From Macrostomum lignano (Eukaryota): a DNA stretch of 64,000 bases. Below are positions 5,297 to 63,999 of this stretch, piece after piece. The position numbers were made by a program, and so were the translations under genes. Position 1 is the stretch's first letter. Every line of letters begins with the position of its first letter. The notes under the pieces were generated by a model, which was not told the origin of the DNA, ran no database searches, and was given only the letters and a program-made list of their open reading frames with translations. The DNA is taken from contig NIVC01001584.1 of assembly GCA_002269645.1 (NCBI GenBank), positions 62,001-126,000 on the forward strand, given 5' to 3'.

Positions 5297-5901
<605 letters not shown>

Positions 5902-6515: not shown

Positions 6516-7485
<970 letters not shown>

Positions 7486-7695
7486 GTAAACATCAACATT
7501 CTAATGTCACTAGCAGGTAGATCGAGATCTGATTGTTGTTTTGACTTTTACGAGACCAAAGTTTAACAGAATTAATATTTTTGTAAAGGTTGCTGAGCAC
7601 CCTTCGGTGACATCGCGTCCCATAACCTGAGCACATGCAAGCGCGCCAATACTGTACGCAGGCACGCACTCATGCACACGCTCACACAGGATCCT

Positions 7696-17446: not shown

Positions 17447-17523
17447 ATGGTAATATTATTTTAAGTTGATTGCCTCATTGTCTCAAAAAAGTGTTTTCAG
17501 CTTTCAATAGAACTGCAAATTCA

Positions 17524-27470: not shown

Positions 27471-30458
27471 ATGCAGCAAGAAGTCGTTAGCGATGAACGT
27501 GGAGAACTTTTACATGTTGATTCTGATCAAGATAGCGAACAGAACCTCAGTAGCACTGCAGCTATAAACGCAGACAGTAATGAGCAACACAATGCCGAAA
27601 CGCATTGTACTTCACTTAAAGACAACTGGGAGTTGATTACTAAAGAGACCATTCAAAAATTGTCTCCCGGAGACGTGATAAGCAGAAAGTACTGCGGATT
27701 CAGTCACAGGATGATTGTGGACAGCGTCGAAGTAAAAAAAGACGCGAACGAAAATTTTGAAAAGGCGACAATTAGTGCCATTTACTACGGTAGGCAGGGA
27801 ATTAAACGCCGGATAGTTCGCGATGTTTTCAGTATTCAAGCGGATGGAAGCTCATCGGTCTTAAAGCCGAAATGTTGGCTTCAGCACCAGCCAAATGAAT
27901 GGTGCTACTCACCTGAAGTTGTGGTTCAGCGAGCTCGGAGCCGTGTAAACGAAGCTCAGCACTCATTTTTTGGAAACACGGCTTCAGACTTCGTCAGGTG
28001 GTGCAAAACCAGGTGTTCCAGCCATCGGCCAGACAACTTAGTCCCGATTTACGTCTCTGAAGATAATAAGAAAATGATTCACTCCGTGAAATCAGACGAC
28101 CATCTGGAAGTCAAATGTGCAGGACGCGACAGATTGCACTGCAAGGTCTTGACGACCACTAAATTAAACAATTCAAAGTTTGAACTAACGATGAGAGCTA
28201 CTTCTGTTGATACAGGAACTAAGCACATCAGGATGGTTCACGAACGAAACATTGAGCTGCAGAGAAACAAGTTAGTAAAAGTAAGCGTCAACTCGCAAGG
28301 TATGGATTTGTCCAATCGCACTGAAAAAATAAAGAACCTGATCTACAAGAATAAGCGAGCTAGAATGCACGATTTCTGCTTGCATCTGACCAACCCCAAC
28401 GTGTCTGATGAGGAATGGATGCAAACAGCGGTCGACGTGCCTAAAAGACATTGGAGTTTCCGAATTCGATTCTTTAAACCTACAAAGCCTGCCGAAAATC
28501 TGAACAAAGGAGACATTGTATATATTCAGGGCCATTACCAAGTTGTAACTAATGTAGCGTTCAACGATTCTAAAGTCGAAATTACTACTATGCTGTATGG
28601 AAAAAAAGAATTAAAAGCCAATGAACCGATCGAAGTAAAGCTTGCCATTGAAGCTAAAGAACGGGACGCGATTCTCTGCGTACACAATGACGCCGCATTA
28701 GACTGCCCTCTGGAAGGTGGAGGACGAAAGAAGCCAAGTTACACTTTCGAAAGAATCAAGGATTCAGCTCAGATACAGAAAGGGTGTACAATCAGTATGA
28801 GAAGCGGATCCCCACTGTTTAAACACTGTATCGTTTCCAGTGTCGCAACAGACAATGAGAGTGCTACCGAATCTGAGAGTGCTTCTGATTCTGAGTTTTT
28901 TGTTGAATCTTCTGATATAGTATCTTTTAGTGCCATTTCATACGAACTAGGATCACTCATAGCAGAGAAAAGCTTCACTTTAAATGTCTCGAAGAGCACA
29001 ATCTATCGAGTGACCTACAATGTCTCAGATGAAAGCATGTACTCCAGCAATGAAGTCGTCGAAAGAGCCCGCTCACGCCTGGGCGAGAGGCAGCACAACA
29101 TCCAGTGGAACAGCAGCAGGGACTTCGCTCGCTGGTGTAGCATCAAGCACCAGAGTAATCGAGAACAGACCCGCGTCCCCGTCAACTCTGCTGATGAACT
29201 CCATGCATTCAAGCAGGGTCACGTTAGATTTTTGAAGCTCCTTCCGTACTCGCATCATGCAATTCTAAGGGATTGCAGCAAAGTAGAAGGATGCAATGAT
29301 ATCTTGAAAGTTACCATGTACGAGAACAATGTTGCTTATAAATGTGTCAGAAAAGAGCAGCTGGATATTTCAGAGAACGAAACCGTTCGACGAGTAAGGT
29401 ACGCAGAACGTCGCGAAGTCAACTCTGCCAGTGTCGAGCAGCTACTCGGCCTCACATTCTTAAACGCGGACGATGATTGGCTTGGGTTCAGCGGCCCAAT
29501 CGTTAAGAAGTGTGGCAGCAGAGTAAAGAGTGAGGATTTCTGTTGCTGGATTAAAACCAGCTACTGCGAGAGAGGAGAAAAGGCAGTTCAAGAGTTGTTC
29601 GATCAGAGTACCAGAAAACAGGTGGAAGTGGAGGAGATTGGAAGAGACAGCGTCAATATTTTTGACCACATCATTCTCACTCGCAAAGCTAACGGAAATG
29701 ACATTGAGGTTCATTTCATTGTCACTGAGTGGGATTCAATTGCGTGCACTGGTGTCGGTATGACGTACGAGTTTTCCGCTGAAAAGGTCGGTTTGAGATT
29801 TAAGAAGTTCGATGGCTTTCTGCGAGTGACGGGCCCGGGTCACATTGAGAAAGTGGTGCACAACTCCGAGCTCAACTGGGACCAAATCGATGCCAAGTTT
29901 AAAGAGCTGGAAGGAATTGAGGAATACAGCCTACTTTTTAACAACTGTGAACATTTTGTTAATTACCTGATTTATGGCCGCCTTACCTGCTCTCAGTTAA
30001 GCCGGGTGACAGGCCTTGGAACAAAGTATGTACTGAGATTTTTGCGCACTATAATGATTTATGTTTTTCGATTTTTTAAAGGATTTGGAAAACAGTTATC
30101 ATCATTTTCTCCTGTTGGTGATGTGATTGGCACCATTCCGGATGGATTAACATGGTGGTGCGAGGGTTTAGGCCTTGCTTTCATTGCGCTGATGATCATT
30201 AGCTCGATCGTCTGGCTTCGAAAACGTCAAGCAGACTTGGCCATGCCTGATCACGAGTTTAAATATCGATTGATCAACATCCTGTCCATGGGAGGCTGTG
30301 CGCTTCTAGGAGCTGTCTTAGCATTCGGACTGGTTCACGTGTTGCTACTGTCAAGTTGGCCAGCAATTTGCCTTGGTGTCGGAATCGGTTCATTTGTGGC
30401 AGTAGTCGGATACTTCGCTCCTAAGCTCTGGGCACTTTTAAAATGCCTTAGGCCTTAG
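27471..30458 (+). CDS. Multi-LRAT/PLAAT-like (H-box/NC) repeat membrane protein, paralogue 1 (995 aa, 6 modules)
   Basis: Intact ORF. ATG directly follows the acceptor ttcag, with a candidate donor GTAAGT at 27074. Repeated GDxI..H..(V/I)..VxxRARSRxxE..N..F.xWC modules. The last module has YSLLFNNCEHFVNYLIYG (Cys codon 29946-29948), followed by hydrophobic helices. Confidence 0.85.
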   Translation: MQQEVVSDERGELLHVDSDQDSEQNLSSTAAINADSNEQHNAETHCTSLKDNWELITKETIQKLSPGDVISRKYCGFSHRMIVDSVEVKKDANENFEKATISAIYYGRQGIKRRIVRDVFSIQADGSSSVLKPKCWLQHQPNEWCYSPEVVVQRARSRVNEAQHSFFGNTASDFVRWCKTRCSSHRPDNLVPIYVSEDNKKMIHSVKSDDHLEVKCAGRDRLHCKVLTTTKLNNSKFELTMRATSVDTGTKHIRMVHERNIELQRNKLVKVSVNSQGMDLSNRTEKIKNLIYKNKRARMHDFCLHLTNPNVSDEEWMQTAVDVPKRHWSFRIRFFKPTKPAENLNKGDIVYIQGHYQVVTNVAFNDSKVEITTMLYGKKELKANEPIEVKLAIEAKERDAILCVHNDAALDCPLEGGGRKKPSYTFERIKDSAQIQKGCTISMRSGSPLFKHCIVSSVATDNESATESESASDSEFFVESSDIVSFSAISYELGSLIAEKSFTLNVSKSTIYRVTYNVSDESMYSSNEVVERARSRLGERQHNIQWNSSRDFARWCSIKHQSNREQTRVPVNSADELHAFKQGHVRFLKLLPYSHHAILRDCSKVEGCNDILKVTMYENNVAYKCVRKEQLDISENETVRRVRYAERREVNSASVEQLLGLTFLNADDDWLGFSGPIVKKCGSRVKSEDFCCWIKTSYCERGEKAVQELFDQSTRKQVEVEEIGRDSVNIFDHIILTRKANGNDIEVHFIVTEWDSIACTGVGMTYEFSAEKVGLRFKKFDGFLRVTGPGHIEKVVHNSELNWDQIDAKFKELEGIEEYSLLFNNCEHFVNYLIYGRLTCSQLSRVTGLGTKYVLRFLRTIMIYVFRFFKGFGKQLSSFSPVGDVIGTIPDGLTWWCEGLGLAFIALMIISSIVWLRKRQADLAMPDHEFKYRLINILSMGGCALLGAVLAFGLVHVLLLSSWPAICLGVGIGSFVAVVGYFAPKLWALLKCLRP

Positions 30459-33077: not shown

Positions 33078-33248
<171 letters not shown>

Positions 33249-33389
33249 CCTAAAAGAAAGGGACAGAACCCATGCTATTCATTATTTTACTAAAATGTTT
33301 GGGGGCCTCAGATTCTGCAGACTCAGACTCTGCATTGCAGTATGCACTGGATTGTGCATCTATAGATGCCATGGTTATCGGAGTGTTGG

Positions 33390-34020
33390 GGAACCAACAG
33401 GACTAGGAATGGAAGCTTCCGTACATCACCTGGGCCTATAAAACCTCGGTGCACAGCACCACCGGCCTCAGCCCATATAGTAGGCCTTCAAGGCTGGCCA
33501 CCCAGACTGCATGGCTCTTGACAGCTGGCTGATAACGGCGACCGGCCGGCAGCGGACGGTGGACATCGCGGCTTCCTGCAGCGGACTCAGAAAACCCTGG
33601 CAGAGCACCGTTGACTCGGTGCATGGCCAGCTGCGGCGTGCGCAGATCGAGCGGAACTGGCTCGCCAACCAGGACTGCCATATTGTGCCGTTCTTGGAGG
33701 GCCAGCTCGTGGTGCTCTGCAACTAAGTGCGGCCAGACGTGGAGCCTGAGTGACAAGTGGAAAGGGTCGTACCGAGTCCTGAGCACCTGACTACCTGCAG
33801 CTTCCGTCTTCGTCATCACTGGAGCTTCCATCCGCTGTCGACAAAGGGGAAAGTGATGTAGTCGACTTGTTAGTGCGCAGGGCTCTGTAGGGTGCCCGTG
33901 CAAGCGATGTCTTTGGGGTGAGGGTTGCTTGTTATCGCATGCATGTTGGTAGTGGGTGCACTCAGCCCCCGTTCTAGTTCAAATATATTGGCGTGCGACA
34001 GTGAGGTGGGCCTCACGCGT
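33390..34020 (+). mobile_element. Ty3/Gypsy remnant: integrase C-terminus, PPT and start of the 3' LTR
   Basis: Plus-strand translation gives WKLPYITWAYKTSVHSTTGLSPY, then FLEGQLVVL and DKWKGSYRVL (GPY/F-like). Purine tract AAAGGGGAAAG at 33843-33853 precedes TGTAGT at 33857. Absent from duplicate copy B. Confidence 0.75.
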
Positions 34021-35419
34021 TTTTGGGTAATCATTCTTAAACCACGCTCTTATGGCTCGCACTATCAATGACAGGATAGACAAAAAAGAAGTGCATTCTT
34101 GTAGAAGTTGTTTCGCTGTGATAAGCTCGAGTTAATAAAAGTTTCTTCGCGTCAAACAAGCAGACAGTTTTAAAGCCTATAGCAGTGTTTTAAGCTTCAT
34201 TACCCAAAAAGGTACACTTGAATAACTGCTTATTGATTTTCTTCTACAAACTTCTGCATTGGTAAGCAGCTAAAACATTCCTCTATTTAGTTATAGTGAC
34301 GACTGACTCTAAGACTGATGATTTATAATTCAGTCTTATGATAGTACTCATTTTATTCATTGATTGAAGCCCGTAAATTTTAGCCCAGTAGAGTTGTTGA
34401 CATAATACGAGCGTAAACCCATTAAAAAACAAGGCAATTTTTTGTGACTAATTTCGTTTTTTCAAATGGTTGTCAAAATATAACACAACCATGTAAATAG
34501 CTAATCGTTGCGGTGTCTCTGTACAAGTCAAGTAATCGAAGGACAACAACAAAAACAACAACAAAATACTTCACCCGTCAGCCACGCAGTGGAAAGAAAG
34601 GGGGAGAAGTCACAGAGCGCGTCTCTGGGTCATAGCCCTCAGAAAGTCACCTACAGCTTGGTCCGGGGCGCCAGCATCGTTAGGACGCTGCACTTTTAGC
34701 ACGTGATCCAAAATCTCACGTTCTGGACTTCCAAATTTCAATTGTAGCCAAGCACGCCCCACATTGCACTAATAAGCTTATCAATGCGAAAATCTTTAAG
34801 CAGTCTCGCAGGACAGTGTCTCTGTGTTGCCAGTTGGCAAGGCTCCAGATACTGTTTTGTTTTCTAAACCGGTTTCGCGAAGATTTGTTTTATTTAATTA
34901 GGCTAAATGGGGTTTGGCCAAGGACAAAATTCGATCAAGAAAAAGCTTTGCTAGAAAAATGCGATGATGGGAGCACGAGAATCGGCCGCAGGGAGATTTG
35001 CCCACCGAGCGTTTCGTGCCGAACATAGAAAAGAAAACCTACAAGAAACAGTTTGATCTGGTAAATTTCTTTATTCGCTGCCGGAAATACGACAAAAACT
35101 CGGCGGGCAATTCTCTTGGACCCCGATAAGACATGGATATAGCGACTTCCAAAACATTATTTACGTCTTTTGGGACTTTATTCGACTATATTTATTATTA
35201 GCCCAGAAAATATTTGAACCCGTGTGACTTATGTGAGGACACAAGCCTTTCTCTGGAGCTGTATCACAATTTTTTCGTATTGCGCATCGAAAACCGGTCT
35301 CTAGAGCAAAATCTGAAATCTGACCTTCTACATTAGTTCTCCTTGGCAATGTGCTACATCCATATTCAAGGACCACTAATTGCCGAAATTAGCTTTCTAA
35401 AAAACCCGGACAATTTCAG

Positions 35420-38400
35420 ATGCAGGCACTCGAAGGCTCGAAGACTGCACAGCGGCTGCCCCTTCAACAAGAGGCTGCAGCAGCTGTGGTGGCCGCCCAG
35501 CCGCCCGGCACCCCCGAGGCAGCAGCTCTGCAAGCTGAGAGACCTTCACCGGTAACAGGCTCAATTCAGAGCTTCGAAACTTTAACGCCGGAATCGATTC
35601 GAAATGTAAAGCCTGGAGATGTCATCAAAGCGTCAGGACGTTCTGAAGAAATCGTTGTTAAAGTTGAAGTCAAAGACGGATTCTTTACATTTTCGACAAT
35701 TTATCCCAAACTATGCAGAGTTTTCGGCCAAATTGAGAGACGAGTAATCAAAGACATATTAATAGTTAAAATTATAAATTCTAAAAGATCAAAACAGCTG
35801 AAACCCAGTTGCCAACTTCGACACTTTCCAAAATCGTGCTGCCATGCTCTTGACGAAGTTGTCTGGAGAGCTCGAAGTCTCTTGAACGAGAAACGCCTTA
35901 CTAATAAGTCAGGTTTCATACTTTGGTGCAAGACCAAAGACCAATCTCACAGGAAAAATTGTACCGTGCCAATTTATCTGCCTGGGAATTTCGAAATCCA
36001 CCAAGTGAAAGTTGGCGATCATTTGAGTCTTAAGCACGACTCTGGTTCAATTCATGCAGTCGTACGAAGTAGCCAAGAGATGTGCGAGGACATTTATTTA
36101 CTATCGTTGAGTGTTTCCACGCAGGACTTGATGAAGGATCGAATTGCCTTTGTAAACATTTCTACGCGAAAATTTCTACAATCGAAAGAATCGAATGAGC
36201 GCGTTCCAGTTGTAATATCGGTATCGAAGTGCGTGGAGACTAAGGAATTTCTCCACAGGATCGAATTGATGCGCGGCCTCGCGTATCCGAGGCGCATTTC
36301 GACTCTGCAGTTTTGCCTTCTTCTCACCGACTCGAGTCGCCACGGGCAGGACTGGAGGCAGCAAGTCGCACAGATGTCGAATCAGAGTAGACCGATTCGA
36401 CCATTGACCCGAAAAATTGAAGCGAAAAATCTTCAACGAGGCGACATCATTTTTGTTGACGATGCCTACAGAGTAGTCTGCAGTGTAGATAGCGACAAGG
36501 ATGAAGTCAGCGTTAAATTAGTCAACTACGTTGAAGTCGACCACGAAGATTGCAAGACTTGCACGCTAAAGTATCTGATAAAAAAGGAAGAGACGGAAAC
36601 AACTCTGTGTGTGCATAATGATAACACCGCTGATTGCCCTTTGGACTTAGAAGAATCATCGCCGGTAAATCTCGCAGTCATCTGCTCAGAGGAACCGGTA
36701 ACCCTCCAGTTGCTTCAACAGCTACAGAAGGGTGACGTCATTCGCCTGTGGTACACTGGCAAGTGGCACAGGGTTATCGTGGAAAAACTGGCGCATGAAA
36801 ATGAAGAATACATTGTCACTGCTATTCATTACGGTTTGAAATCGTGGCTTGATGGTAAAACTGTGATCAGAGAGGACTTTGCTTTCAAATATGACAGACA
36901 GCGAACTAAGCAGGTGCATCCGAAGTGCTTTCTCTGCCACTTCTCGGATCTCTGGTGCCACGAGCCCGATGTTGTGGTTGAAAGAGCTCGAAGCCGCCTC
37001 AACGAGCAGGAATACTCTCTGATTGCTAACTGTGGCACTCGGTTTGTCAAGTGGTGTAAGACCAAGTCTATCAGTCACAGAGCTGACAACTCGGTGCCCA
37101 TATTTCTAGATGGCTTTCATACTCACGAAATTAAAGAAGGTGATCATTTTGAATTTAACTGCGGTCTAAAAAACAGACTTCACGGAGAAGTGACCAAAGT
37201 AACTAAACTGAATAATAGGCGAAAACTTTTTCTCGAATTGCAAGTAATCAAGCCCCATGAATTGCATTACGTGCACACAAGTGAACTAGTGCTCAAAACG
37301 GATGAGGAAGTGACTCGAGTCATTCAGTATCAGTCTCGTGTCTTCAGTGAAGCGGAATTGATTCGTCGGATTGAGTTCATAGAAAATTTGGCCTTCAACC
37401 ACAGTGAAAGTTCATTCAAAATTTGTCGCCTGGTGACGAACTGCGATAGCAGATTTGATGATTGGAAAGACAGCATTTGGGATGCATTGACTCAAAATGA
37501 AGTGCAAAGCAATCGGCCCGTATTGGTTGAGAGTGTTACTCCCAATCATGACCATGATGGCCTTAGAGTTGGCGACATCATACAGGTGAATGGTGTCTAT
37601 CGTGTTGTTGCGGGCGTCAGTACCGGCAGCGGTGAGTCATCCAAACAAGTCAGCATTAAAACGCTCCACTATGGCTCTCAAAAACAAAATTTGTGTGTGT
37701 CAAAATTAAAGTACATCATTGATGCTGAAGAGAAGGACGCCAAGCTGTGCGTACACAATGATCCCAGCTTGAACTGCCAATTGTATGGCGGTGGTAGCCA
37801 GGCACCAGCACATATGGCTGAAGAAGTACATGATATGCAAAGCATTTCAGCTGGCTCGGTCATTTCTTGGAGAGACAATCGGTATTCTCTGTACCAGCAC
37901 GCTGTGGTGGTCGGAAACCCGGTGGTACCGGATGCGAACAATCCCCACTGCGCTGCAATCGATGTCATTTTTACAGAGGTTCGTGGAGAGGTCAGATTGA
38001 CAGAAAAAGTTTATCAATAGACTTAAAAAAGCAGAAACTTTACACAGTTAAGTACGATGTACTGGAAGGCTGCGTTCTCACCCCAGAAGAGGTGATTAAA
38101 AGAGCCAACAGCCGACTCAAAGAGAAGCAGCACAACTTCCAGTGGAACAGCAGTCGCGACTTTGCTCGCTGGTGCAGCATCAAGCATAGCAGCAACAGGG
38201 AGCAGTGCGCAGTTCCCGTACACTCGGCAAAAGACCTTCTTAAGTTCGAGAGAGGCCACATAAAGTTCTACAAGTCGCCTTGTTTTTACAAGCACGAAGC
38301 AATTATGCGCAGCTGCTCTGCAGTAGATGGCTGCAGCGATATTGTTCGGGTCGAGTTGTACGAAAACAATCACGATCAGAAACGGGTGCGATTTGAAAAG

Positions 38401-39546
38401 CTCGTCATTGGCCCGGGTGAGAGCTCGATTCGACGGGTCAACTACGGCTTTGAAGAAACCACTGGTTTTTCTATTTTGAAGGAGCTGACGGACTGCACGT
38501 TTTTGAATGCCGACGACGACAGGAAGGGATGGACTGCGAAGGCCAAGAAGTTTGGCAGCAAGGTTTGCAGTCGGGACTTTTGCTTCTGGCTGAGAACTAA
38601 TCCTGATGCCGGTCGGATGTGCGGCATTCAAAGCCTGTTCGGTACTGACCTGGCCGAAATTCAGGACAAAATGAAGAAACTGACCAAAGAAAAATCACTG
38701 AAAGTTTCGGAAAGTAATCAAAAAGTTGAACTCGAAGACAGAGTTGATAGACGCAGTCTCAGGCAATACGATCACATTGTTCTAAATCGGATGGTCAACG
38801 GAGTAGTTTCTGAGGTTGATTTCATTTTAACCGAGTGGGATGCTGCCACTTGTTCCGGCGTTGGGGTCACGTACGAATTGCCGCAAGGTTCCGGAGCCAT
38901 GGGAGTCGTCAAGTTTCAAGGATTTCTTCGCGTTGAAGACAATCAGATCGAGAAGGTCGTGCACAACTCCGATTTAGACTGGAATCAGATCGACGCCAAA
39001 TTCAATCAACTGTGTGGCAGTAGGAGTTACAGTTTACTGTTTAACAACTGCGAACACTTTGTCAACTATTTAATTTATGGCCGGGTGAGCAGTACTCAGC
39101 TGAATAATCTAGCCTGGCGTTTTAGCCACTTTTTGCCCAACGCGGTGCAAAGCATTGCTACTGCCGCAGTTCGAATCCTTCGATTAGTCTACACCTTGAT
39201 GGAGACGGGAAGTTTGAGCACAGCTGCTTCACTTCCCTTAGTGCTGATTGAGGGCGGCTCGGTGCTTTTAATTGCCCTTTTGGGAATTGCATCATATCTT
39301 CTTTTGCGGTATCGTAAAGCGAAATTCAATATGCCTCAGCAGGAGTTCCTCGGCAGAAGACGTGACATCTTGTGCCGCACTTTGGTTCCAATATTTAGCG
39401 TAATCATTGTTGGAGCCGTCATTCACACTGCCCCGGTCAGTGCCCCCATTATTGGCAGTGCCGCTGGAGTCGGAGCACTGGCTGTTGGTCTTGCTTACTT
39501 CCTGCCAAGGTTTTTAGCACTACTGATGGCGCGAATGAAACCGTAG
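35420..39546 (+). pseudogene. Multi-LRAT paralogue 2 (about 1375 aa if repaired, 9 modules); single -1 frameshift
   Basis: ORFs 35420-38020 and 37867-39546 join if one T is added to the T5 run at 37968-37972 (T6 in paralogue 3 at 49401-49406). NNCEHF Cys codon at 39049-39051. May be a homopolymer sequencing error. Confidence 0.8.
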
Positions 39547-41397
39547 CAGATTTACTGCAACCTTTTATTGAATAATTTATTTGCTTACGAACTTTTGTTT
39601 TAATAAGTATGGTATATGTACCTATACAGCCATGGGCAACTGAAGTAGAAGGACGCTCTTAGTGGTGACATGTGTGCCTATGGTGACACCCCATGACCAT
39701 CCCTTACCCTACTTCAGTTGTCTATGTGTATACAGTACGAGTGTTGGAATATTTGGTATATAAAATCCGATGTCTTATTTAATTGACCTTTAATGGGCGC
39801 CTTCGCAGCAAAGAATCAATAGTCTATGGTACAAATACTTCTATACCGGGACCAATAAATCATTTAATGGTCTTCAAACGGGCTCTGCCCCCGCACCTCC
39901 ACCCGCAATCACGGTCGACCAGATTGAATATCCCAAAAATAAGCAATCTGATTTCATAGAAAATAATAGTCATTAAATTAAGCTATGTCTATGGTCTGAA
40001 TGTCCTTGGCCCCACTCAATTACCCTATTCAGCGGGAACTCTCTAAAGCATATTACCTAAATGCACTATAGCAGAAAACAGATGTACGTTCTTTGGCCTC
40101 CAGCTCATTTTCTAAGTAAACTGAGCGTAGCGTCCTTCTACTGCAGCTGTCAATTCGTCTAAAAACGTTCTAGACAGAGTTATTTAAATTTCATATCCTC
40201 TTGAAACAGTACTGCAGATAAATGCACGCGTAATATTCATATCATATTTGTTTGATAAAAAGAGATATGAATGTTTGCAGTATCTAATGGCTCATTAGAA
40301 TTGTGTAGTAATTTCTGTTGTAATTTAAAAACTTTATCTGCCTAAATTAACAAGTGAATTATCATGCAGTTTTTCCAATGATTAACTTTTACAACGCTTG
40401 TAAATTCATAGAAAAAGGTTTGATTTTTGTTAAAATACGCTCGTAGTATACTGCTCGACTTCGTCCTGTTGTACTTTTAAAACGTACGTGGAAGCAGAGA
40501 TTTTCTGAGTATCAACAAATCTTGCGCAAATGGACTGCAGGTGCAAAAATGATCAATTTTTATTTTAAGCAAAATAAAATTCTTACGTTTCTTATCTAAT
40601 GGCCTAGCTAATTAAAGTATATATATACAAGCTGTTGAAACCTGCAGATTTTGAACCCGTGAAATTCCAATCCCCGGAACTACTTCAAAGTATTTTTGCG
40701 TCTATTCTAAAATCTTAAGTCATTTCAGTCACTCAAACAAAAACTTGTTAATAGTTGGGATGGAGGTAAACATAAAATGGAGTAATTTCGTGGAAAATTA
40801 AGATTTGAGGCAAACATTGATCTTGGCTGGGGTGCTGCGCAGAATGTTGGGCAATGTCTATCTAAAGCATGTATTGGCAAACTCATGGCCTCATCTCTTC
40901 TCTTCTCTCTTCTTTCCTCTCTCCTCTCTCCTCTCCTCTCTTTCCTCTCCTTTTTCTCTCTTCTATCAACTCTTTCATCTCTTCTCTATTCTCTCTCCTC
41001 TCTCCTCTTTGTGCTGCCCCATCTTTCCTCTCTTTTCTCTTCTCTCCCCCTCTTTTCTCTTCTCTATAATCTCTCCTATCTCATCTGCCTCTGCTCTCTT
41101 ATCTCTACTCTCTTCTCTCTCCTCTCCTCTCTTCTCTCTCCTCTTCTCTCTTTTCTCTCCTCTACTCTCTTCTTTCTCCTCTACTCTCTGCTCTGCTCAT
41201 CTCTTCTCTCTCTCTCTTTCATCTCATCTCTCTCATCTCCATTCTTCTCTCCCCTCTCCTCTCACTTCTCCCCTCTCCTCTCACTTCTCCCCTCTTCTCT
41301 GCCCTCTCTCTCCTCACCCCTCCTCTCTCCTCTCATCTTTTATATTTTATTTTATCCCCTGTCTCGCCTCTCCTCTCTTCGAATCGTCTATTCCTTC

Positions 41398-44620: not shown

Positions 44621-46843
44621 GTATATAAACGAACACGAAGACAAACTTCACAGCCTCATGCAGTATCTTACATTCTCATATCTCCCAGTATATATCATAC
44701 AGTCTGTGACATGCATTCACATTCTCTCTCTCTCTCTCCATTACATCACATTCTCATGTTTACCAGTCTCATACTTCGAATTCATAGTCTCATATCTTAC
44801 AGTCTTATGCCTGATTGTCTCATATCTCAAAGTCTCATCTCACAGTTTCATGTCTCAAACCTCATATCTCACAGTACCCGCTCTAACACCCTCTGCTATT
44901 TCATTTCTCTCTCAAATCTCCTTCCAGAACACGTGGAGAGCAAAAAACCTATTTAAAAAGATTTAAATGTATTCAAGTTTGAGTTATTTTAGTCTTAATA
45001 TTTTCTACTCTAAAACAAAGTACAAACTAGCGAGTACTCTGACCAAATACATGGTGGCTGAATGACCCGATTCAAATGACGTCTTACTTCAGTCTTTCGG
45101 ATTTGTCAATCAATAAGTAGCAATGATAAAAAATTATAATCCTCTGTATAGATGGCATCTCTTTGTTTATTTTGTCAGTCAGGTTAGAGTAGGGCTTCTC
45201 ATACGAACGTATATACTGTACGTGATGGGTGTAATTTGTTTTTTTGTATGTCAAATTGGCAGCCTATTTTTCTAAATTTCCCCGGAGGCCATTTTTCGCA
45301 TTATGATGTGATGCCTGCCTTTGAATCCATTTAATTCTGCTTGCTTTTGATGGTCAGAGACAGTCTAAGACCCTAAAAGTCTATGTCGAGCGCTGAGCCG
45401 TGTAAGGCCATTCTAGATGATGAAGGTTAAACAATGCATCATTCGCTCCAACATCTAAGTAGCTCTTAAAGACAGTTGAGAGAGAGTAAGAGAGATAAAG
45501 AGATACCTAAAAGAAAAGACGCAGAACCCATGCTATTCATTATTCGATAAAAAATTTTGGGGGGGGGGTCTCAGATTCAGCAGACTCAGACTCTGCTGCA
45601 GTATGCACTGCATTGTGCATCTCTATACGCCATGGTTATACTATCAAAAATAAGATAGACAGAAAAGAAGTGCATTCTTGCGGAAACTGTTTTGCTGCCA
45701 TGCGCAATTATAAATAAGCGCGTGTTAATAAAAGTTTGCTTGCGTCAAACAAACAGACTGTTTTAAACCTACCAGTGTTTCGAGTTTCATGACCTAAACA
45801 GGTACGCTTGCAACTTTTTATTGATTTTCCTTCTACAAACTTCTGCATTGGTAAGCAGGTAAGATGTATTTAATTACTGCTGCTACCTTTACTGCATTTC
45901 TAAATTGCTCTGAGCTTTACTTTTCCAAGCAATTTTCACATTGTCGAAGTTTTTAATGCTTCAAAAACTCGAAACTCTAAGCTTTATATGAGAGCATCGT
46001 CGAAAAGTCTAAGAAGTTCACGAGTCGAACTCATGACTAGCAAGGGTTTTTTTAACGATCATGTAAAGTTCCTATTTTGTGAAAGTGACGATACTGACTC
46101 TAAGACTGATGAGTCTGCTGATATATAATTCATTCTTAATTAAAATAGTATTCAAATTGACACGTTGCTTGAAACCGTAAATATCAACAGTAGCTATCAG
46201 CCTCAGTAGAGTTGTTGAAATACAAACTCATTATGAAATATCAAGGTACTTATTCTTTCCTAAAGTAATTCCCATTTTTACGATTGGTTGTCAAAATAAA
46301 ACATATGCGAATGAAATCACGTCAAGTAATTTTAGCATCAGATCCACAATCTAACGTTCTGGATTTTCAAACTCCACATGTAGCAAGCACATGCATGGTT
46401 CGCTCCAGGTGCACTAATAAAGTTTATTAAGAAAAATCTTTAAGTCGCAGGACAGTGGCAAGGCTCCAAATACTTTTTTGCGAAGATTTTGGTTTATTTC
46501 ATTGAGCTAATCGTAAAAACAGCTTCGACAAGGACGAAATTCAGTCATGAAAAATCTATGCTAGTAAAATATGCGATAATACGAGCTACATGAATATAGC
46601 GACTTCCAAAACACTATTTACGTCTTCTGAGACTTTACTAGGTAATATTTATTTCTATACAGAAAATCGTTCAACTCTATCTTTAATATGAGATGAAAGA
46701 TGCCTTTCTCTGGTGTTGTATATTAAAAACGTTTCGTATTTGCGCATCGAAAACCAGTCTCTAGCAAAATCTGAAATGACCACAATTGCCGAAATGAGCT
46801 TTCTAAAAACCCTGACATTTCTAAAAAACCCGGACAATTTCAG

Positions 46844-49800
46844 ATGCAGGCACTCGAAGGCTCGCAGACTGCACAGCGGCTGCCCCTTCAACAAGAGGCT
46901 GCAGCAGCTGTGGTGGCCGCCCAGCCGCCCGACACTCCCGAGGCAGCAGCTCTGCAAGCTGAGAGACCTTCACCGGTTACAGGCTCAATTCAGAGCTACG
47001 AAACTTTAACACCGGAATCGATTCGAAATGTAAGGCCTGGAGATGTCATCAAAGCGTCAGGACGTTCTGAAGCAATCGTTGTTGGAGTTGAATTCAAAGA
47101 CGGATTATTTGAATTTTCGACAATTTATCCCAAACTATGCAGAGTTTTCGGCCAAATTGAGAGACGAGTAATCAAAGACATATTAATAGTTAAAATTATA
47201 AATTCTAAAAGATCTAAACATCTGAAACCCAGTTGCCAACTTCGACACTTTCCAAAATCGTGCTGCCATGCTCTTGACGAAGTTGTCAGGAGAGCTCGAA
47301 GTCTCTTGAACGAGAAACGCCTTACTAATAAGTCAGGTTTCATACTTTGTTGCAAGACGAAGGACCAATCTCACAGAAAACATTGTACCGTGCCAATTTA
47401 TCTGCCTGGAAATTTTGAAACCCATGAAGTAAAAGTTGGGGATCATTTGAGTCTTAAGCACGACTCTGGATCAATTCATGCAGTCGTACGAAGTAGCCAA
47501 GAGATGTGCGAGGACATTTATTTACTATCGTTGAGTGTTTCCGCGCAGGACTTGATGAAGAATCGAATTTCCTTTGTGAACCTTTCTAAGCGAAAATTTA
47601 TACAATCGAATGAGCGCGTTCCAGTTGTAATATCGGTATCGAAGTGCGTAGAGACTAAGGAATTTCTCCACAGGATCGAATTGATGCGCGGCGTCGCGTA
47701 TCCGAGGCGCATTTCGACTCTGCAGTTTTGCCTTCTTCTCACCGACTCGAGTCGCCACGGGCAGGACTGGAGGCTGCAAGTCGCACAGATGTCGAATCAA
47801 AGTAGACTGATTCGACCATTGACCCGAAAAATTGAAGCGAAAAATCTTCAAAGAGGCGACATCATTTTTGTTGACGATGCCTACAGAGTAGTCCGCCGTG
47901 TAGTTAGCGACGCGGATGAATTCAGCGTTAAATTAGTCAACTACAGTGAAGTCGACCACGAAAATCGCAAGACTTGCACGCTAAAGTATCTGATAAGAAA
48001 GAAAGAGACGGAAACAACTCTGTGCGTGCACAATGACAACACCGCTGATTGTCCTTTAGACTTAGAAGACTCATCTCCGGTAAATCTCGCAGCCATCTAC
48101 TCAGAGGAACCGGTAACCCTCCAGTTGCTTCAACAGCTACAGAAAGGTGACGTCATTTGCCTGCGGTACACTGGCAAGTGGCACAGGGTTATTGTGGAGA
48201 AACTGGCGCATGAAAATGAAGAATACATTGTCACTGCTATTCATTACGGATTGAAATCGTGGTTTGACGGTAAAACAGTGATCAGAGAGGACTTTGTTTT
48301 CAAATATGACAGACAGCGAACTAAGCAGGTGCATCCGAAGTGCTTTCTCTGCCACTTCTCGGATCTCTGGTGCCACGAGCCCGATGTTGTGGTTGAAAGA
48401 GCTCGAAGCCGCCTCAACGAGCAGGAATACTCTCTGATTGCTAACTGTGGCACTTGGTTTGTCGTGTGGTGTAAGACCAAGTCCATCAGCCACAGAGCTG
48501 ACAACTCGGTGCCCATATTTCTAGATGGCTCTCACACTCACGAAATTAAAGGAGGTGATCATCTTGAATTTAACTGCGGTCTAAAAAACAGACTTCACGG
48601 AGAAGTGACCAAAGTAACTAAACTGAATAATGGGCGAAAACTTTTTCTCGAATTGCAAGTAATCAAGCCCCATGAATTGCATTACGTGCACACAAGTGAA
48701 CTAGTGCTCAAAACGGATGAGGAAGTGACTCGAGTCATTCAGTATCCGTTTCGTGTCATCAGTGAAGCGGAATTAACATGACGCATTGAGTTCATAGAAA
48801 ATTTGGCCTTCAACCACAGTGAAAGTTCATTCAAACTTTGTCGCCTGGTGACGAACTGCGATAGCAGATTTGATGATTGGAAAGACAGCATTTGGGATGC
48901 ATTGACTCAAAATGAAGTGCAAAGCAATCGGCCCGTATTGGTTGAGAGTGTTACTCCCAATCATGACAATGAGTTATCCGTGGCTTGTGATGGCCTTAGA
49001 GTTGGCGACATCATACTTGTGAATGGTGTCTATCGTGTTGTTGCGGGCGTCAGTGCCGGCAGCGGTCAGTCATCCGGACAAGTCAGCATTAAAACGCTCC
49101 ACTACGGCTCTCAAAAACAAAATTTGTGTGTGTCAAAATTAAAGTACATCATTGATGCTGAAGAGAAGGACGCCAAACTGTGCGTACACAATGATCCCAG
49201 CTTGAACTGCCAATTGTATGGCGGTGGTAGCCAGGCACCAGCACATATGGCTGAAGAAGTACATGATATGCAAAGCATTTCAGCTGGCTCGGTCATTTCT
49301 TGGAGAGACCATTGGTATTCTCTGTACCAGCACGCTGTGGTGGTCGGAAACCCGGTGGTACCGGATGCGAACAATCCCCACTGCGCTGCAATCGATGTCA
49401 TTTTTTACAGAGGTTCGTGGAGAGGTCAGATTGAGAGGCAAACTTTATCAGTAGACTTGAAGAAGCAGAAAATTTATACGATTAAGTACAACGTACTGGA
49501 AGGCTGCGTTCTCACCCCAGAAGAGGTGATTAAAAGAGCCAACAGCCGACTCAAAGAGAAGCAGCACAACTTCCAGTGGAACAGCAGTCGCGACTTTGCT
49601 CGCTGGTGCAGCATCAAGCATAGCAGCAACAGGGAGCAGTGCGCAGTTCCCGTACACTCGGCGAAAGACCTTGTTGAGTTCGAGAGAGGCCACATAAAGT
49701 TCTACAAGTCGCCTTGCTTTTACAAGCACGAAGCAATTATGCGCAGCTGCTCTGCAGTGGATGGCTGCAGCGATATTGTTCGGGTCGAGTTGTACGAAAA

Positions 49801-50983
49801 TAATCACGACCAGAAACGGGTGCGATTTGAAAAGCTCGTCATTGGCCCGGGTGAGAGCTCGATTCGACGCGTCAACTACTACGGCTTTGAAGAAGCCGCT
49901 GGTTTTGCTATTCTGGAGGAGCTGACGGACTGCACGTTTTTGAATGCCGACGACGACAGGAAGGGATGGACTGCGAAGGCCAAGAAGTTTGGCAGCAAGG
50001 TTTGCAACCGGGACTTTTGCTTCTGGCTGAGAACTAATTCTGATGCCGGTCGGATGTGCGGCATTCAAAGCCTGTTCGGTACTGACCTGGCCGAAATTCA
50101 GGACAAAATGAAGAAACTTATTAGAGAAAAATCACTAAAGGTTTCGGAAAGTAATCAAAAAGTTGAACTCGAAGACAGAGTTGATAGACGCAGTCTCAGG
50201 CAATACGATCACATTATTCTGAATCGGATGGTCAACGGTGTAGTTTCTGAGGCTGATTTCATTTTAACCGAGTGGGATGCTGCCACTTGTTCCGGCGTTG
50301 GGGTCACGTACGCATTGCCGCAGGATCCAAAAGACATGGGAGTCGTCAAGTTTCAAGGATTTCTTCGAGTTGAAGACAATCAAATCGAGAAGGTCGTGCA
50401 CAACTCCGATTTAGACTGGAATCAGATCGACGCCAAATTCAATCAACTGTGTGGCAGTAGGAGTTACAGTTTACTGTTTAACAACTGCGAACACTTTGTC
50501 AACTATTTAATTTATGGCCGGGTGAGCAGTACTCAGCTGAATAATCTAGCCTGGCGTTTTAGCCACTTTTTGCCCAACGCGGTACAAAGCATTGCTACTG
50601 CCGCAGTTCGAATCCTTCGATTAGTCTACACCTTGATGGAGACGGGAAGTTTGAACACAGCTGCTTCACTTCCCTTAGTGCTGATTGAGGGCGGCTTGGT
50701 GCTTTTAATTGCCCTTTTGGGTATTGCATCATATCTGCTTTTGCAGCATCGCAAAGCGAACTTCAATATGCCTCAGCAGGAGTTCCTCGGCAGAAGACGT
50801 GACATCTTGTGCCGCACTTTGGTTCCAATATTTAGCGTAATCATTGTTGGAGCCGTCATTCACACTGCCCCGGTCAGTGCCCCCATTATTGGCAGTGCCG
50901 CTGGAGTCGGAGCACTGGCTGTTGGTCTTGCTTACTTCCTGCCAAGCATGCGCGCCATACTGATGGCGCGAATGAAACCGTAG
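46844..50983 (+). pseudogene. Multi-LRAT paralogue 3 (1379 codons, 9 modules); single in-frame TGA at codon 646
   Basis: ORFs 46844-48781 and 48803-50983 are in the same frame. TGA at 48779-48781 aligns with Arg (CGT) of paralogue 2. NNCEHF Cys codon at 50486-50488. Confidence 0.82.
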
Positions 50984-51055
50984 CAGATTCACTGCAACCT
51001 TTTATTGAATAATTTTTTAATTACGAATAATTATTAGATATGTGTACCAACAGTC

Positions 51056-52019
51056 ATGGACAACTGAAGTAGAAGGATGCTCTTAGTCTTAGTATATTTT
51101 CGAGAAAGCTAATTTGTCTATGGTGAAACCCCATGACCATACCATTGCCCTACTTCAGTAATTGTCTATGCGTATACTTATTCTAAAGTAATTATTTACT
51201 CTACCATACAAAATTGCTTATTTAATAGCTCCAGACAAACTACGACCTTGTAATATGCTGAAGACCATGCATAAAGTCCAGAAGTTTACGGTACATGCAT
51301 ATTTATGGTATTTTTCGACTTAATTGCGTGACGTACTCAGGAAAAAAACAGTTGCTTTTAGTTTAAACCAGGGCTTGGCAAACTTTTTTTACCTGAAGGG
51401 CCTTCTCTCGACTAGAGAATCTAGTGCATAGCCGCGGGCCAGTGGAAGGGTGAGAGATGGTCAGAGCTAATAGAGAAGAGAGAATTAATTAAGGAGAGGC
51501 GAGGGATAAAAGAGGAGAGGAGAGACAAAATAAATGAGAACAGAAGATAGAGCAGAGGAGATGAGAGGAGCGAAGGGAGAGAAGATGAGAGAATAGAGAA
51601 CATATTATTAAAGAGAAGAGAGCTGAGAAGAGGCAAACCTTGAGCAGGCCGGATTGCTATTATGAAATTTCAAAGCACTCGAGGGTTAGGGAGCCTCATG
51701 TGGCCCGCAGGCCGAAGTTTTCTGATCCCTGATTTAAGCAATTAAGTTTTTTAAAGATGCATAAACATAAAAAACTGGAGTACAAGCTTAGACGATACAC
51801 TCAGCTTTCCTAGAAATTTTGTGCTAGATGCCGGTTAAACATATACTTGCCGCATTGCTAATGCCTTATTAATATGCTCTAATATGTGACCTAATTTTTC
51901 GATTTACGACCCTATTCAGCCTTCTCTAAAGCATACTAAATTCACTACGGCAGACATACGTTCTTTGGCCTCCAGGTCATTTCTAGTGTATATAGCGTCC
52001 TTCTGCTTCAGTTGTCCAT
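51056..52019. mobile_element. Old MITE with about 25-bp TIR (ATGGACAACTGAAGYAGAAGGAYGC), containing a nested hAT
   Basis: Near-perfect inverted ends; a more diverged homologous pair lies at about 39635-40150 in duplication copy A. Confidence 0.6.
51369..51731 (+). mobile_element. hAT (Charlie-like) MITE with GA-rich interior
   Basis: Ends CAGGGCTTGGCAAACT / GGCCCGCAGGCCGAAGTTTTTCTGATCCCTG; degenerate 8-bp TSD GTTTAAAC / ATTTAAGC. Confidence 0.7.
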
Positions 52020-52687
52020 TCATCTAGAAACGTTCTATAGACAAAGAATTATTTCAATTTCATATCCTCTTTAAACAGTACTGCAGCCAAATGCATGCGT
52101 ATTATTCAGAAAAAAAATTCCTGTGTTTTTAAAAAATGAAGTACGAGTAATAAATATTACATGAATATTGGTGATGGCTAATTAAAATCGTGCAGTAATT
52201 TTTGTTTTAATAGAAACTTAATCTGACTAAATTAATAAGTGAATATTATGCAGTTTTTTTTCAAATGGTTATCTTTTTTTCAACGCTGTTAAATTCATAG
52301 AAAAAAGTTTGACTTTTTGTTTAAACACGCTCGTAGTACTGCTGGACTTCATCCGTTTTGTTTTTACACGTGAAAGCAGCGATTTTCTGAGTGTAAGCAA
52401 CTCTTGCTCAAACGGACAGCGGATACAAAAGTAATCATTTCTATTTTTAACATATTAAAATTCTTAAATTTCTTATCTAATGCCCTACCTATATGTACTT
52501 CATGCGGAAAATGTGTTATCAAAGCCGCCAGATGTACAGAGATTTCGCATCAAGCTTCAGGCGTGTTTTTATATGTCAGAGCTATTTATAACATGTCAGA
52601 GATACGAGCGTTTATATTTATTAGCTATCTTGCTTGCTTTTTGTAATGCACAGTGCACAGGATTTTCTGGCGAGGCGCTTGACCGCT

Positions 52688-55600
52688 ATGGTAAGTTCTT
52701 TCGCTTGTTACATGTAACTAAAAATCGACAATGTTATACACACAATACCACGAATATCTTTTCTACTTTTAGGAACAAACTCAGAACCAGGGAATTTTCG
52801 TTTCCGCTGTAGCCGAAAACACGACTGAAAGTGATGCTGTTGAAGCTGACGAACTCGCTACCGCTTGTGATGCGCCCTGCGAATCAACCGAGTCACAAGC
52901 CGATACGGCACCACGGGTGTATTGCTACGAGGAGAGGCTCACGTGCGAATCAATCAAGAATGTTGCCATTGGCGACGTACTAGAAATCCGATACTTTGAA
53001 CTGCCGCACAAAATTATCGTGGAGAACACGAGCATCGTTGACACTGAGCAGGAGTTGATCATCACCATCGATGCCATTCACTACGGAAGAGACTGGCTTT
53101 CTGTCCAGGTAATGAGAGAAAAATTTCAATTCATTGCTCGAAAAGACTCATTGGATCCCGGTGGGGCGCTGAGCAGGAAATGCTGGAAGTGTCACTTCCC
53201 ACCAACCTGGTGCCACCCACCCGATGTGGTAGTGCAAAGAGCTCGAAGTCGGCTGAACGAACGAGAGCACTCGGTCATTGACAACAGGGCGTCTCATTTT
53301 GCATTTTGGTGCAAGACCCAGTCGGTTAGCAATCGTGCGAACAATATTGTACCGATCTTTGTAGCCGCTAATCAGCACATTCACGAAGTGAAAGTTGGCG
53401 ACCATTTGAACTTTGCGACAGACGGTGAAATTGAATTACACGGAGAAGTTAGAGATGCTGTCAAGGCGAGTGAGTCGCAGGTTTTGTTAACTATGCTAGT
53501 GTCGAGTAGACACGTGAACAGAGAAATAATCAACTCTGCGCACATTTGTGAAACTAGAATTCAAAAACCAGTACAAGTTGTAAAATCAGCTGCAATTGGT
53601 CTGACTAGTGAAGATTTACAATGGCGAATCAGAATGATACAGGATATTTCCTACAAGCGTTTGGTTGGAAAACTTGCCTTCTGTCTACACCTGACCAATC
53701 CTAACTTAAGCAGGGAAGACTGGCTTTGTCGAGCTATCCAGGTTCCAAACGTCACGACAGAAACTGCGCAACCACTCTGTAAGACCATTCGCCCAGAGCT
53801 GTTGAATCCAGGCGACATCATACTGCATGACGGCATATACTCAGTGGTGTCTGCAGTCAGATGCGATGGCTCAGGTGCTCTGATAACTAAAATTCAGTAC
53901 TCTGCCCGTCGAGTAAACAAAAATGCTCATAACTGCCTGTTTGAAATAAAAATTGCTATCGAAAAATACGAAAGACAGGCTGTGCTTTGCGTTCACAACG
54001 ACATTTTCCGAGATTGTCATCTGTACGGTGGAGGACTTGAAACACCCAGCTACACTGTAACCAAGGTGACGAGTGTGAATGAAATTTACAAAGGGTGCGT
54101 CATTAGCACCAGAGACGGCTTAGTCTTCAAACACTTGGTTGTCACCGATTGTCCCAAAATAATTAGTACACCGGCAATGAAAAACCAAGTGATGTTTAGC
54201 GCGATTTCCTACAATGTAGGACCTTCTATGTTGCTCGGAAAAAATTCCGTCGCCGAGAGCAGCTACACAATAAATTTAAGAACAACGCCAGTTTACGTTG
54301 TGAAGTACTGTGTCTCGAACGAGGTTCTCTACTCAACTGAGGAGGTGGTTCTTAGGGCTCGCTCGCGTCTGGGAGAGAGACAGCACAACTTCCAGTGGAA
54401 CAGCGGCCGAGACTTAGCTCGATGGTGCAGCATCAAGCACCAGAGTAATTTGGAACAGTGCATCGTTCCTGTTACCTCGGCAGACGATCTACATCGTTTC
54501 CAAAGAGGACACATCAAATTCTTGAAGAAGCCGAAGTCTCTCTACGCGCACGATGTTCTTCTCAAAGAGTGCAGTAAAGTTGAAGACTGCGACGATGTGC
54601 TGAGAGTGATATACTATGAAAACAACGTCGTTTTCAAGCATGTCCGCATTGAGAAGCTGGGCATTGGAGAAGATGAGCACCTCCAAAGAGTTCGGTACGC
54701 AAGCTGTCGAGAATGGAACCAAGCAGAACTAGAAAATCTGATTGATCATACGTTTCTAAATGCGGATGACGATCGGCTGGGCTACCTAGGAATGCAAGGC
54801 AGCAGAGTGACTAGCCAAGATTTTTGCTTCTGGATAAAAACTCGCTTCTCAAAGGATGGCATCAAGGCAGTCAAAAACTTACTCGGCGAGGAGTTGGGGC
54901 TGTTAAGGAACGAACTGAAAGTCAAGAGGAAGGACACGGAAACCATCGTAGGTGGACGAAGCCTAAAACCGTTGGATCACATCGTTCTTAGGCGCACTGT
55001 AGCTGGTAAGGAAGCAGAAGTTCACTTCGTCATCACGAGCTGGGATGCAAATTTATCTACCGGCTATGGAGTAACTTACGAATTTCCCGTAAAGAAGACC
55101 GAAATGGGATTCTACGAGTTTAAAGGCTTTCTCAGATTAACTGGCCCGGGTCAGATCGAGAAGGTGGTGCACAACTCAGAGTTCAATTGGGATCTAATTC
55201 TAGAAAAAATTCGAGATCTGTGCGGAGGGGAAGATTACAGCATTCCGTTCAACAATTGCGAGCACTTTGTCAACTACTTGATTTATGGCAGAGTTGTCTG
55301 TCTGCAGCTAGTTAGGCACTCGAGGAGGCTGCTTGGCTTTGTACCGAGTTTTCTACACCATATAGCTGCCGATTGCATTAGATTCCAGAAGTTTGCAATG
55401 CACCACGCGTCTGGCTTAAGAAAAGTCGGCGTTAAAATTCCAATTTTTGAGAGCGTTGGCCTAGTTCTCAACCTTGTTATCGCCGGCTGTCGATTTCTGC
55501 AACTGATCAGGCGTCGGGCTCGAACAGCCATGCCACACGAAGAGTTTTCGATGCGAAGACGTTATATTTTCGTGGACGCGATTTCGTCAACATTCGGGGT

Positions 55601-55727
55601 TTTATTGGCTCTTGTTTTGATCGCAGTGCAGGCTACTGTATTTACACCGCTCACTCTGTGTTCCGCACTCATTGGGTACGCGTTGTTGAAGCTGATTCCC
55701 TTGGTAAAATCAATTTTTGTGCCTTGA
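52688..55727 (+). CDS. Multi-LRAT paralogue 4; predicted join(52688..52690,52773..55727), 985 aa, 6 modules
   Basis: ATG|gtaagt at 52688-52696 and acceptor tttag|GAA at 52772/52773 are in frame with the 52917-55727 ORF (MEQTQNQGIF...). The last module has EVHFVI and YSIPFNNCEHFVNYLIYG (Cys 55257-55259), followed by a hydrophobic C-terminus. Confidence 0.85.

Positions 55728-57092: not shown

Positions 57093-63999
<6,907 letters not shown>

Follow-up and report, generated by a model that had tools for sequence, protein, structure and literature searches.

Results

Four LRAT-type genes lie in tandem on a Macrostomum lignano contig

Here, we analyzed a 64-kb stretch of the genome of the flatworm Macrostomum lignano (assembly GCA_002269645.1, contig NIVC01001584.1, positions 62,001–126,000 of the forward strand), referred to below as the window and numbered from its first letter. 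The central feature of the window is a group of four genes, par1 to par4, whose products are of the LRAT (lecithin:retinol acyltransferase)/PLAAT type. In the open reading frame (ORF) listing, these paralogues occupy the plus strand at 27471–30458, 35420–39546, 46844–50983 and 52917–55727, in keeping with the original prediction, which had been made from the letters alone and had proposed a tandem cluster of four same-strand paralogues within 27471–55727. Judged from its sequence, the locus is likely to be a lineage-expanded tandem cluster of large membrane-anchored LRAT/PLAAT proteins, in each of which one catalytic domain is joined to an array of pseudoenzyme domains.

The four proteins share a hydrophilic region of ~800–1200 residues, formed by modules of ~110–140 residues each, and a C-terminal membrane anchor. 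The first gene, par1 (27471–30458, plus strand), is an intact single exon encoding 995 residues, with six modules (A–F) followed by the anchor. The last, par4 (52646–55727, plus strand), encodes 999 residues of the same six-module layout in two exons, of which exon 1 (52646–52690, 45 nt) carries the ATG at 52646 and is separated from exon 2 (52773–55727) by an 82-nt intron with GT..AG borders (52691–52772). The GTG at 52917, from which the ORF listing starts par4, was rejected as an artefact of that listing. The cluster proteins are 97–99% identical to two known M. lignano proteins, with par1 97% identical to BOX15_Mlig034298g1 and par4 matching BOX15_Mlig027402g1 (P0002) at 986 of 999 residues. 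The two middle genes, par2 (35420–39546, plus strand) and par3 (46844–50983, plus strand), encode nine modules in the order A'B'C'-ABC-DEF before the anchor, that is, par1-like proteins in which the first three modules, A-B-C (~370 residues), are duplicated N-terminally. Their frames had been predicted to run uninterrupted, and this did not hold for either gene. In par2, a 1-bp deletion in a T-run at 37968–37972 (TTTTT, aligned with TTTTTT in par3 and in L001, a further assembled version of the locus described below) breaks the frame, leaving two overlapping ORFs in different frames, and par3 carries an in-frame TGA at 48779–48781, where L001 has CGA and par2 has CGT.

In paralogues with no more than 41–44% identity, the NNCEHF-containing module F and many other columns are invariant; by region, identity between paralogues is highest across D-E-F (43–56%) and lowest in module B and the tail (25–35%). 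The intergenic DNA among the cluster genes contains low-complexity ORFs only, and no viral or transposon genes were found there. A viral or transposon origin of the par genes was rejected on the strength of these intergenic ORFs and of the spliceosomal intron of par4.

Support for LRAT-family membership differs between the modules

At the level of whole proteins, the Pfam LRAT family PF04970 (gathering score 24.3 bits) was matched at 57.4 bits by par1, in three stretches, at 55.7 bits by par4, and at 44.0 and 47.8 bits by the C-terminal ORFs of par2 and par3, respectively. These scores of 44–57 bits on the proteins containing module F, together with the PLAAT matches described below, support the placement of the family within the permuted NlpC/P60 superfamily, on its LRAT/PLAAT branch. 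The original prediction had further proposed that each module be scored separately against Pfam LRAT, and the outcome was uneven: among the isolated par1 modules, F (29577–29990, plus strand; residues 703–840) scored 33.4 bits and passed the cut-off, A (27618–28034, plus strand; residues 50–188) and D (28749–29168, plus strand; residues 427–566) fell just below it (18.6 bits, E = 2.4e-3, and 20.9 bits, E = 4.6e-4), and B (28035–28424, plus strand; residues 189–318), C (28425–28748, plus strand; residues 319–426) and E (29169–29576, plus strand; residues 567–702) returned no Pfam match.

The silence of Pfam on B, C and E would be expected if the proteins were of mixed-domain composition, with A, D and F alone being LRAT domains and B, C and E being unrelated beta-rich adaptors (SH3, Tudor or PWWP-like) that share the GDxI hairpin. 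We consider this alternative unlikely, though it deserves to be weighed in earnest. To avoid circularity, the module profile was built from 354 LRAT-like modules of non-Macrostomum proteins obtained in a search of 1.84 billion proteins; iterated hidden Markov model (HMM) searches in which the Macrostomum paralogues were included were discarded as circular and replaced by these non-Macrostomum profiles. Modules A and D scored 70–107 bits against the bivalve-derived HMM (84–107 bits for par1 module A), and these two modules and A' reached 99.8–99.9% in hhalign. Module F scored 12–14 bits and 96.9% in hhalign, rising to 98.3% against the subset of Cys-type modules. Module E, at about 5–12 bits, was aligned by hhalign at 96.0% (E = 4.6e-9) over 109–110 columns; this alignment spans the whole module, the counterpart of the NC helix among it, and has the His retained. 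Module B, at about −1 to 13 bits, was aligned at 87.3% (E = 3.8e-6) over ~109 columns, and module C, at about 3–14 bits, at 91.6% over 70 columns, which cover the beta half only; against the Cys or Ser module subsets, C reached 72–77% over ~40 columns. These alignments of B, C and E to modules from outside Macrostomum argue against unrelated adaptors.

The modules were also compared with one another. The A versus D alignment (hhalign E = 1.7e-14) lies far above chance, and in pairwise hhalign restricted to the window significance was reached solely by A versus D and by A versus C across the hairpin. In a permissive alignment, A-B-C is collinear with D-E-F over 342 columns, with A versus D carrying the signal and B/C versus E/F not significant alone. 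The A-B and D-E junctions are collinear, which again speaks against a mixed-domain protein, and the two module pairs appear to have arisen by duplication of a single unit. Furthermore, C ends in the motif LCVHND..(D)C.L(YGGG) (par1 residues 402–418, window ~28674–28724), which is invariant in all paralogues sharing 25–40% identity, and within the same alignment this invariant VHN(D/S)-containing LCVHND strand faces the invariant VVHNSE strand of F. The collinearity of A-B-C with D-E-F, with these two strands opposite one another, suggests descent from a unit of three modules, with loss of the helical half in C.

The three-part motif with VxxRARSRxxE at its center is confined to A, D and A', being absent from B, C and E; the repeat of GDxI, RARSR and N...F.xWC, which had been attributed to every module, occurs two to three times per protein, namely twice in the six-module proteins (par1, par4) and three times in the nine-module ones (par2, par3). 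Taken together, A, D, A' and F are firmly assigned by sequence as LRAT domains, E is probably LRAT-derived, and B and C are at best eroded LRAT derivatives. The proposed count of six or nine LRAT modules consequently holds for A, D, A' and F and probably for E (96%), and does not extend with the same force to B (87%) or to C (92%, beta half only).

A single Cys-bearing module adjoins the predicted membrane anchor

The motif NCEHF occurs once per paralogue (nt 29943–29957 in par1, 39046–39060 in par2, 50483–50497 in par3 and 55254–55268 in par4), always as NNCEHF and always in module F, just as had been foreseen for a single canonical NC motif in the last module. In F, the H-box His is kept in every paralogue, and its strand (EVHFIV) lies N-terminal to NNCEHF, which corresponds to the permuted order. 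In the structure model of par1, NNCEHF stands at the start of the helix spanning residues 826–835.

Alignment to the LRAT-module profile placed NTASDF, NRASHF, NCGTRF and NSSRDF at the NC position, as originally read. When the catalytic positions were tabulated by module, A carried Ala in par1 (NTASDF) and par4; in par2 and par3, its inner copy has Gly and its first copy has lost part of the motif. The H-box His of A is kept except in that first copy. Module D keeps the His and carries Ser in par1 to par3 (NSSRDF in par1), Gly in par4 and Arg in the relative P0001, and module E keeps the His and carries Ser or Asn (KSEDF in par1). Module B also keeps the His, has an inconsistent residue in place of a nucleophile, and is of tentative LRAT origin, whereas C has no NC region and shows Tyr or a gap at the position of the His. 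Since the replacing residue varies between paralogues, we interpret the upstream modules, among them A, D and A', as pseudoenzymes. The per-module Pfam scores and the catalytic positions agree with the proposal of a single Cys module beside the membrane anchor, the nucleophile being lost upstream.

Hydropathy analysis confined the hydrophobic segments of all four proteins to the last ~100 residues, arranged as a ~20-residue segment, a basic loop of about 20 residues and a ~45-residue stretch. In par1, the anchor (29991–30455, plus strand; residues 841–995; terminus APKLWALLKCLRP) comprises an amphipathic helix and about three hydrophobic helices, and the par1 model places four long helices in it at low confidence. 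A C-terminal hydrophobic anchor adjoining F was correctly anticipated, although as a single segment. As the proteins have no N-terminal hydrophobic segment, the module array and F should face the cytosol.

Structure models and the limits of the domain assignment

The AlphaFold2 model of par1 had a mean predicted local distance difference test (pLDDT) score of 71, with most module blocks at 75–90. DSSP assignment gave A, B, D, E and F four to six strands each, with two helices after them, and gave C strands only. The strands-then-two-helices arrangement of B and E follows the LRAT order and disfavors the mixed-domain alternative, with which the lack of helices in C is compatible. Foldseek search of the Protein Data Bank (PDB) with the whole par1 model returned human HRASLS3/PLAAT3 (4dot) as the best match and the sole meaningful one (prob 0.99, TMt 0.63, E = 0.076), and the PDB sequence matches consisted of PLAAT2/3/4 and LRAT chimeras only, located at the NC helix.

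Several findings weigh against the reading of these proteins as a live LRAT domain with an array of dead ones. The module of par1 that matches 4dot is not given in the Foldseek output, so this match does not serve to assign modules. A separate model of B+C was well defined (pLDDT 81, predicted TM-score 0.80), and its 50 best Foldseek matches in the PDB included no PLAAT or NlpC/P60 structure; the sole matches above noise were PWWP/BAH-type barrels (prob 0.2–0.5, 37–58 columns). Profile searches of the PDB with B+C and with E likewise retrieved noise only and no LRAT-family chain. The structural check suggested at the outset, AlphaFold followed by Foldseek, was split, with par1 matching 4dot best and B+C matching no PLAAT or NlpC/P60 fold; the B+C outcome goes part of the way towards the refutation that the original prediction had set for itself. 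The B+C and E results favor the mixed-domain alternative, as does one M. lignano relative labelled 'Agenet-like domain-containing' in UniRef. With respect to the putative catalytic module itself, the third triad position of F aligns with the Thr of GVGMTYEF, in a single hhalign alignment of low local confidence, and the membrane topology is a prediction from hydropathy alone. Finally, two of the four cluster genes are disrupted, and the comparison of par2 with par3 (dS 0.079; ratio of nonsynonymous to synonymous substitution rates, dN/dS, 0.41) indicates moderate constraint only. The noise matches in the PDB profile searches with B+C and E were Med17 and HamA.

The nine-module genes are recently duplicated and unstable

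Comparison of the window with itself by blastn identified a recent tandem duplication unit on the plus strand at 35131–39733, with a second copy at 46588–51177, the two being 92.6% identical in DNA over 4.6 kb; repeat families D1 and D4–D7, at 95–97%, likewise reflect this duplication. Two further assembled versions of the locus are present in GCA_002269645.1. The first, L001 (NIVC01004522.1), contains one nine-module copy with a 22-bp deletion and par4 directly after it. The second, L002 (NIVC01001606.1), contains, in order, an intact par1-like gene, an intact nine-module gene (P0003, 1379 residues), a 5'-truncated copy whose start corresponds to window position 48743, and a par4-like gene. 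Across the three versions (window 31–57 kb, L001 and L002), the number of nine-module copies ranges from one through one and a half to two, and each copy has a lesion of its own or none; the differences reflect variation between haplotypes or homeologues, or else collapse during assembly, in a duplicate-rich genome. The nine-module genes have accumulated three independent lesions and vary in number, while par1 and par4 remain intact. With two of the four genes broken and the locus copies differing in gene number and integrity, the sequences indicate that the family evolves by birth and death; the expanded family that had been proposed, corroborated by its other M. lignano loci, is also structurally unstable, as seen in the three locus versions.

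This instability could be taken to mean that the cluster is decaying, consisting of pseudogenes or dispensable recent duplicates without a present role in a duplicate-rich genome, an alternative that we regard as very unlikely. The frameshift in par2, the nonsense codon in par3, the 22-bp deletion in L001, the variable gene number of the assembled copies, the relaxed dN/dS of 0.41 and the repeat- and transposon-rich surroundings all fit such a scenario. However, par1 and par4 keep open frames of ~3 kb, and intact orthologous copies of 989 and 999 residues exist in the other locus versions, as does the intact nine-module P0003. Moreover, dN/dS is well under 1, the NNCEHF module and many columns stay invariant at 41–44% paralogue identity, and the design is conserved in bivalves.

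Bivalve proteins combine the same parts in reverse order

An exhaustive search of 1.84 billion representative proteins yielded 253 proteins at E < 1e-3. Named relatives were looked up for 30 of the best 150, and all of them were from M. lignano or bivalves. The best matches were other M. lignano loci (Mlig000580, 011640, 012089, 023781, 006580, 000755, 001054 and 014099), followed by bivalve proteins of Potamilus, Mytilus and Mercenaria that are unnamed or annotated as hypothetical or 'LRAT domain-containing'.

The bivalve multi-LRAT proteins (for example, Potamilus KAK3603616.1, Mytilus XP_076105740.1 and Mercenaria XP_053378500.1) resemble the flatworm ones in having one Cys-type LRAT domain each, a 1+2 hydrophobic cassette and an array of nucleophile-less LRAT modules, which share the signature VVxRARSRLGE...N.S..F..WC with flatworm A and D. 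They differ in order, which is reversed: a canonical NCEHF-containing LRAT domain comes first, the hydrophobic cassette second, and then 4–11 modules in which the Cys is mostly replaced by Ser (NRSxHF) and both His are kept. Exactly one Cys module was counted in 121 of 146 non-Macrostomum relatives. The bivalve cassette has the same layout as the flatworm anchor and a similar terminal APKLW..P motif; the flatworm tail profile scored a weak 12–17 bits against the bivalve proteins, with a hydrophobic bias, and was collinear with their cassettes. In BLAST, the bivalve proteins showed no B-, C-, E- or F-type similarity. Both the window proteins and the bivalve proteins fit a grouping that we define by one Cys module next to a 1+2 cassette and at least two nucleophile-less RARSRLGE...N.x..F..WC modules. 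On sequence grounds, the flatworm proteins thus appear to be the bivalve parts kit in reverse order, with homology of the cassettes weakly supported, and the recurrence of the same parts in reversed order suggests that the design of live LRAT domain, cassette and dead array predates the Macrostomum cluster. The literature contained, as far as we found, no description of a serial-LRAT architecture or of tandem LRAT arrays, and no paper linking Macrostomum with LRAT or mentioning the BOX15 locus tags. The architecture, which had not been recognised as that of any characterised protein, accordingly appears to be undescribed in the literature, but its layout is not unique, given the reversed version in bivalves.

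Within the bivalve proteins P0007, P0008, P0010, P0011 and P0030, the array modules are highly consistent in their NRSxHF motif and retain both His, and in the Mytilus protein P0008 they alternate with a second, more degenerate type (WTTEGF). From sequence, the bivalve NRSxHF modules may represent an LRAT active site of a Ser-His-His type. A multi-catalytic enzyme is a further alternative, which we hold to be highly improbable; in it, the Ser-bearing, His-retaining modules (D and E, and the majority of array modules in bivalves) would work as Ser-His hydrolases or acyltransferases. In its favor, Ser is found more often than any other residue at the Cys position across the 354 non-Macrostomum modules (S 144 vs C 137), mostly as NRSxHF with both His, and the H-box His is retained in D and E. 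Against it, the residue is not conserved within the cluster (Ser, Gly or, in P0001, Arg in D; Ser, Asn or Asp in E; Ala or Gly in A), and Cys-to-Ser mutants of LRAT and PLAAT3 are reported to be inactive.

Other features of the window

The window as a whole has eukaryotic traits, namely a low coding density, long microsatellites and transposon remnants, and an Rfam scan of all 64 kb found no RNA family. At its left end lies a direct duplication of about 2.4–2.8 kb (2315–4673 and 5858–8760, 94–95% identity) that carries N-terminal helix-turn-helix fragments of a mariner/Mos1-type transposase (ORFs 4117–4644 and 8057–8887, minus strand; PF13565, PF17906), and very long trinucleotide microsatellites (2843–3496 and 6576–7499) adjoin these fragments. 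A 217-residue ORF at 9151–9804 (minus strand) has an N-terminus resembling a signal peptide and encodes a weak PAN domain as well as a galactose-binding domain that is F5/8 type C/NedA-like (PF22633, E = 3e-11); it possibly represents one exon of a gene for a secreted, lectin-like protein. Further along, an ORF at 17470–19225 (plus strand) consists of a tandem repeat with a period of ~59 bp (PPRSSVAGQPASQILSCW...) and, after it, a domain similar to C9orf72 (PF15019, E = 7e-14). Immediately upstream of par1, non-LTR (long terminal repeat) retrotransposon remnants occupy 23628–26335 (plus strand) and include an RNase H domain at 25519–25992 (PF00075, E = 3e-8), beside which lie ORFs that resemble endonuclease/reverse-transcriptase fragments and have no Pfam match. 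Downstream of the cluster, at 60.8–62.6 kb, a minisatellite array runs both in tandem and inverted (60890–61388 vs 62456–61944, 92% identity).

Discussion

By analogy with known enzymes, the most likely function of the cluster proteins is that of a membrane-tethered phospholipase A/acyltransferase with a pseudoenzyme scaffold. Module F would act in a PLAAT-like manner, with the beta2 His activating the Cys, which would accept an acyl chain from a glycerophospholipid of the tethering membrane to form a thioester intermediate. The acyl chain would then pass to water (phospholipase A1/2 activity) or to an acceptor (N- or O-acyltransferase activity). The pseudo-LRAT array, being unable to form the thioester, would provide a scaffold for the binding of lipid or protein or for the gating of F.

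The closest known counterparts are PLAAT1–5 (HRASLS; PLA2G16 is PLAAT3), which provide the best PDB sequence and fold matches. Module F shares with them the H-box His followed by NCEHF and, as predicted, the permuted NlpC/P60 fold, and likewise directly precedes a C-terminal hydrophobic membrane segment. In contrast to the PLAATs, which have ~160 residues, one domain and one tail helix, the cluster proteins have 5–8 extra modules (~700–1100 residues) upstream and an anchor of about three hydrophobic helices, and the third triad residue of F is apparently Thr rather than His. In PLAATs, that third position is taken by His or a polar residue, for example Asn in the case of PLAAT1. Published work describes a Cys-His-His/polar triad and a PLAAT hydrophobic tail that is needed for translocation to the membranes of organelles; degradation of these membranes follows (PMC10102619).

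LRAT itself belongs to the same PF04970 family and is membrane-anchored, with the same Cys-His acyl-enzyme chemistry that is expected, by analogy, for F; it differs in being a single domain that has membrane helices at both termini and contains an LRAT-specific insert, without an array of pseudo-domains. A precedent for LRAT-fold pseudoenzymes such as A and D is provided by LRATD1 and LRATD2 (FAM84A/B), which have no catalytic Cys, but which are single-domain, soluble vertebrate proteins fused neither to an active LRAT domain nor to an anchor (PMC10318531).

Picornaviral 2A-like and giant-virus LRAT proteins belong to the same H-box/NC superfamily. In the Foldseek search of viral models (BFVD), the best annotated LRAT match was a Catovirus LRAT protein (prob 1.00), and no picornaviral 2A protein was among the top 50 matches. 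Unlike these viral proteins, the cluster genes are cellular, par4 having a spliceosomal intron.

PLAAT and LRAT enzymes are known as small single-domain proteins that remodel or destroy membranes, with roles in lens organelle clearance, in picornavirus entry or restriction, and in N-acylphosphatidylethanolamine and retinyl-ester synthesis. Against this background, it is conceivable, although we hold it to be quite unlikely, that the cluster proteins are self-contained sensor-effector machines of a spiralian cell-autonomous defence or of organelle clearance, in which the fast-evolving dead array would bind a lipid or protein derived from a pathogen or from damage and so free a membrane-tethered, membrane-disrupting phospholipase of the PLAAT type, the design being common to flatworms and bivalves in permuted form.

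The family described here fuses one LRAT domain and an anchor to long arrays of related modules that are devoid of the nucleophile, and this combination is found in two phyla of Spiralia, with its parts in opposite orders. M. lignano is amenable to RNA interference and transgenesis. The family makes it possible to examine how membrane attack of the PLAAT type is kept under control, and it lends itself, as a natural system, to the study of pseudo-LRAT domain function, a question that is also posed by vertebrate LRATD1 and LRATD2.

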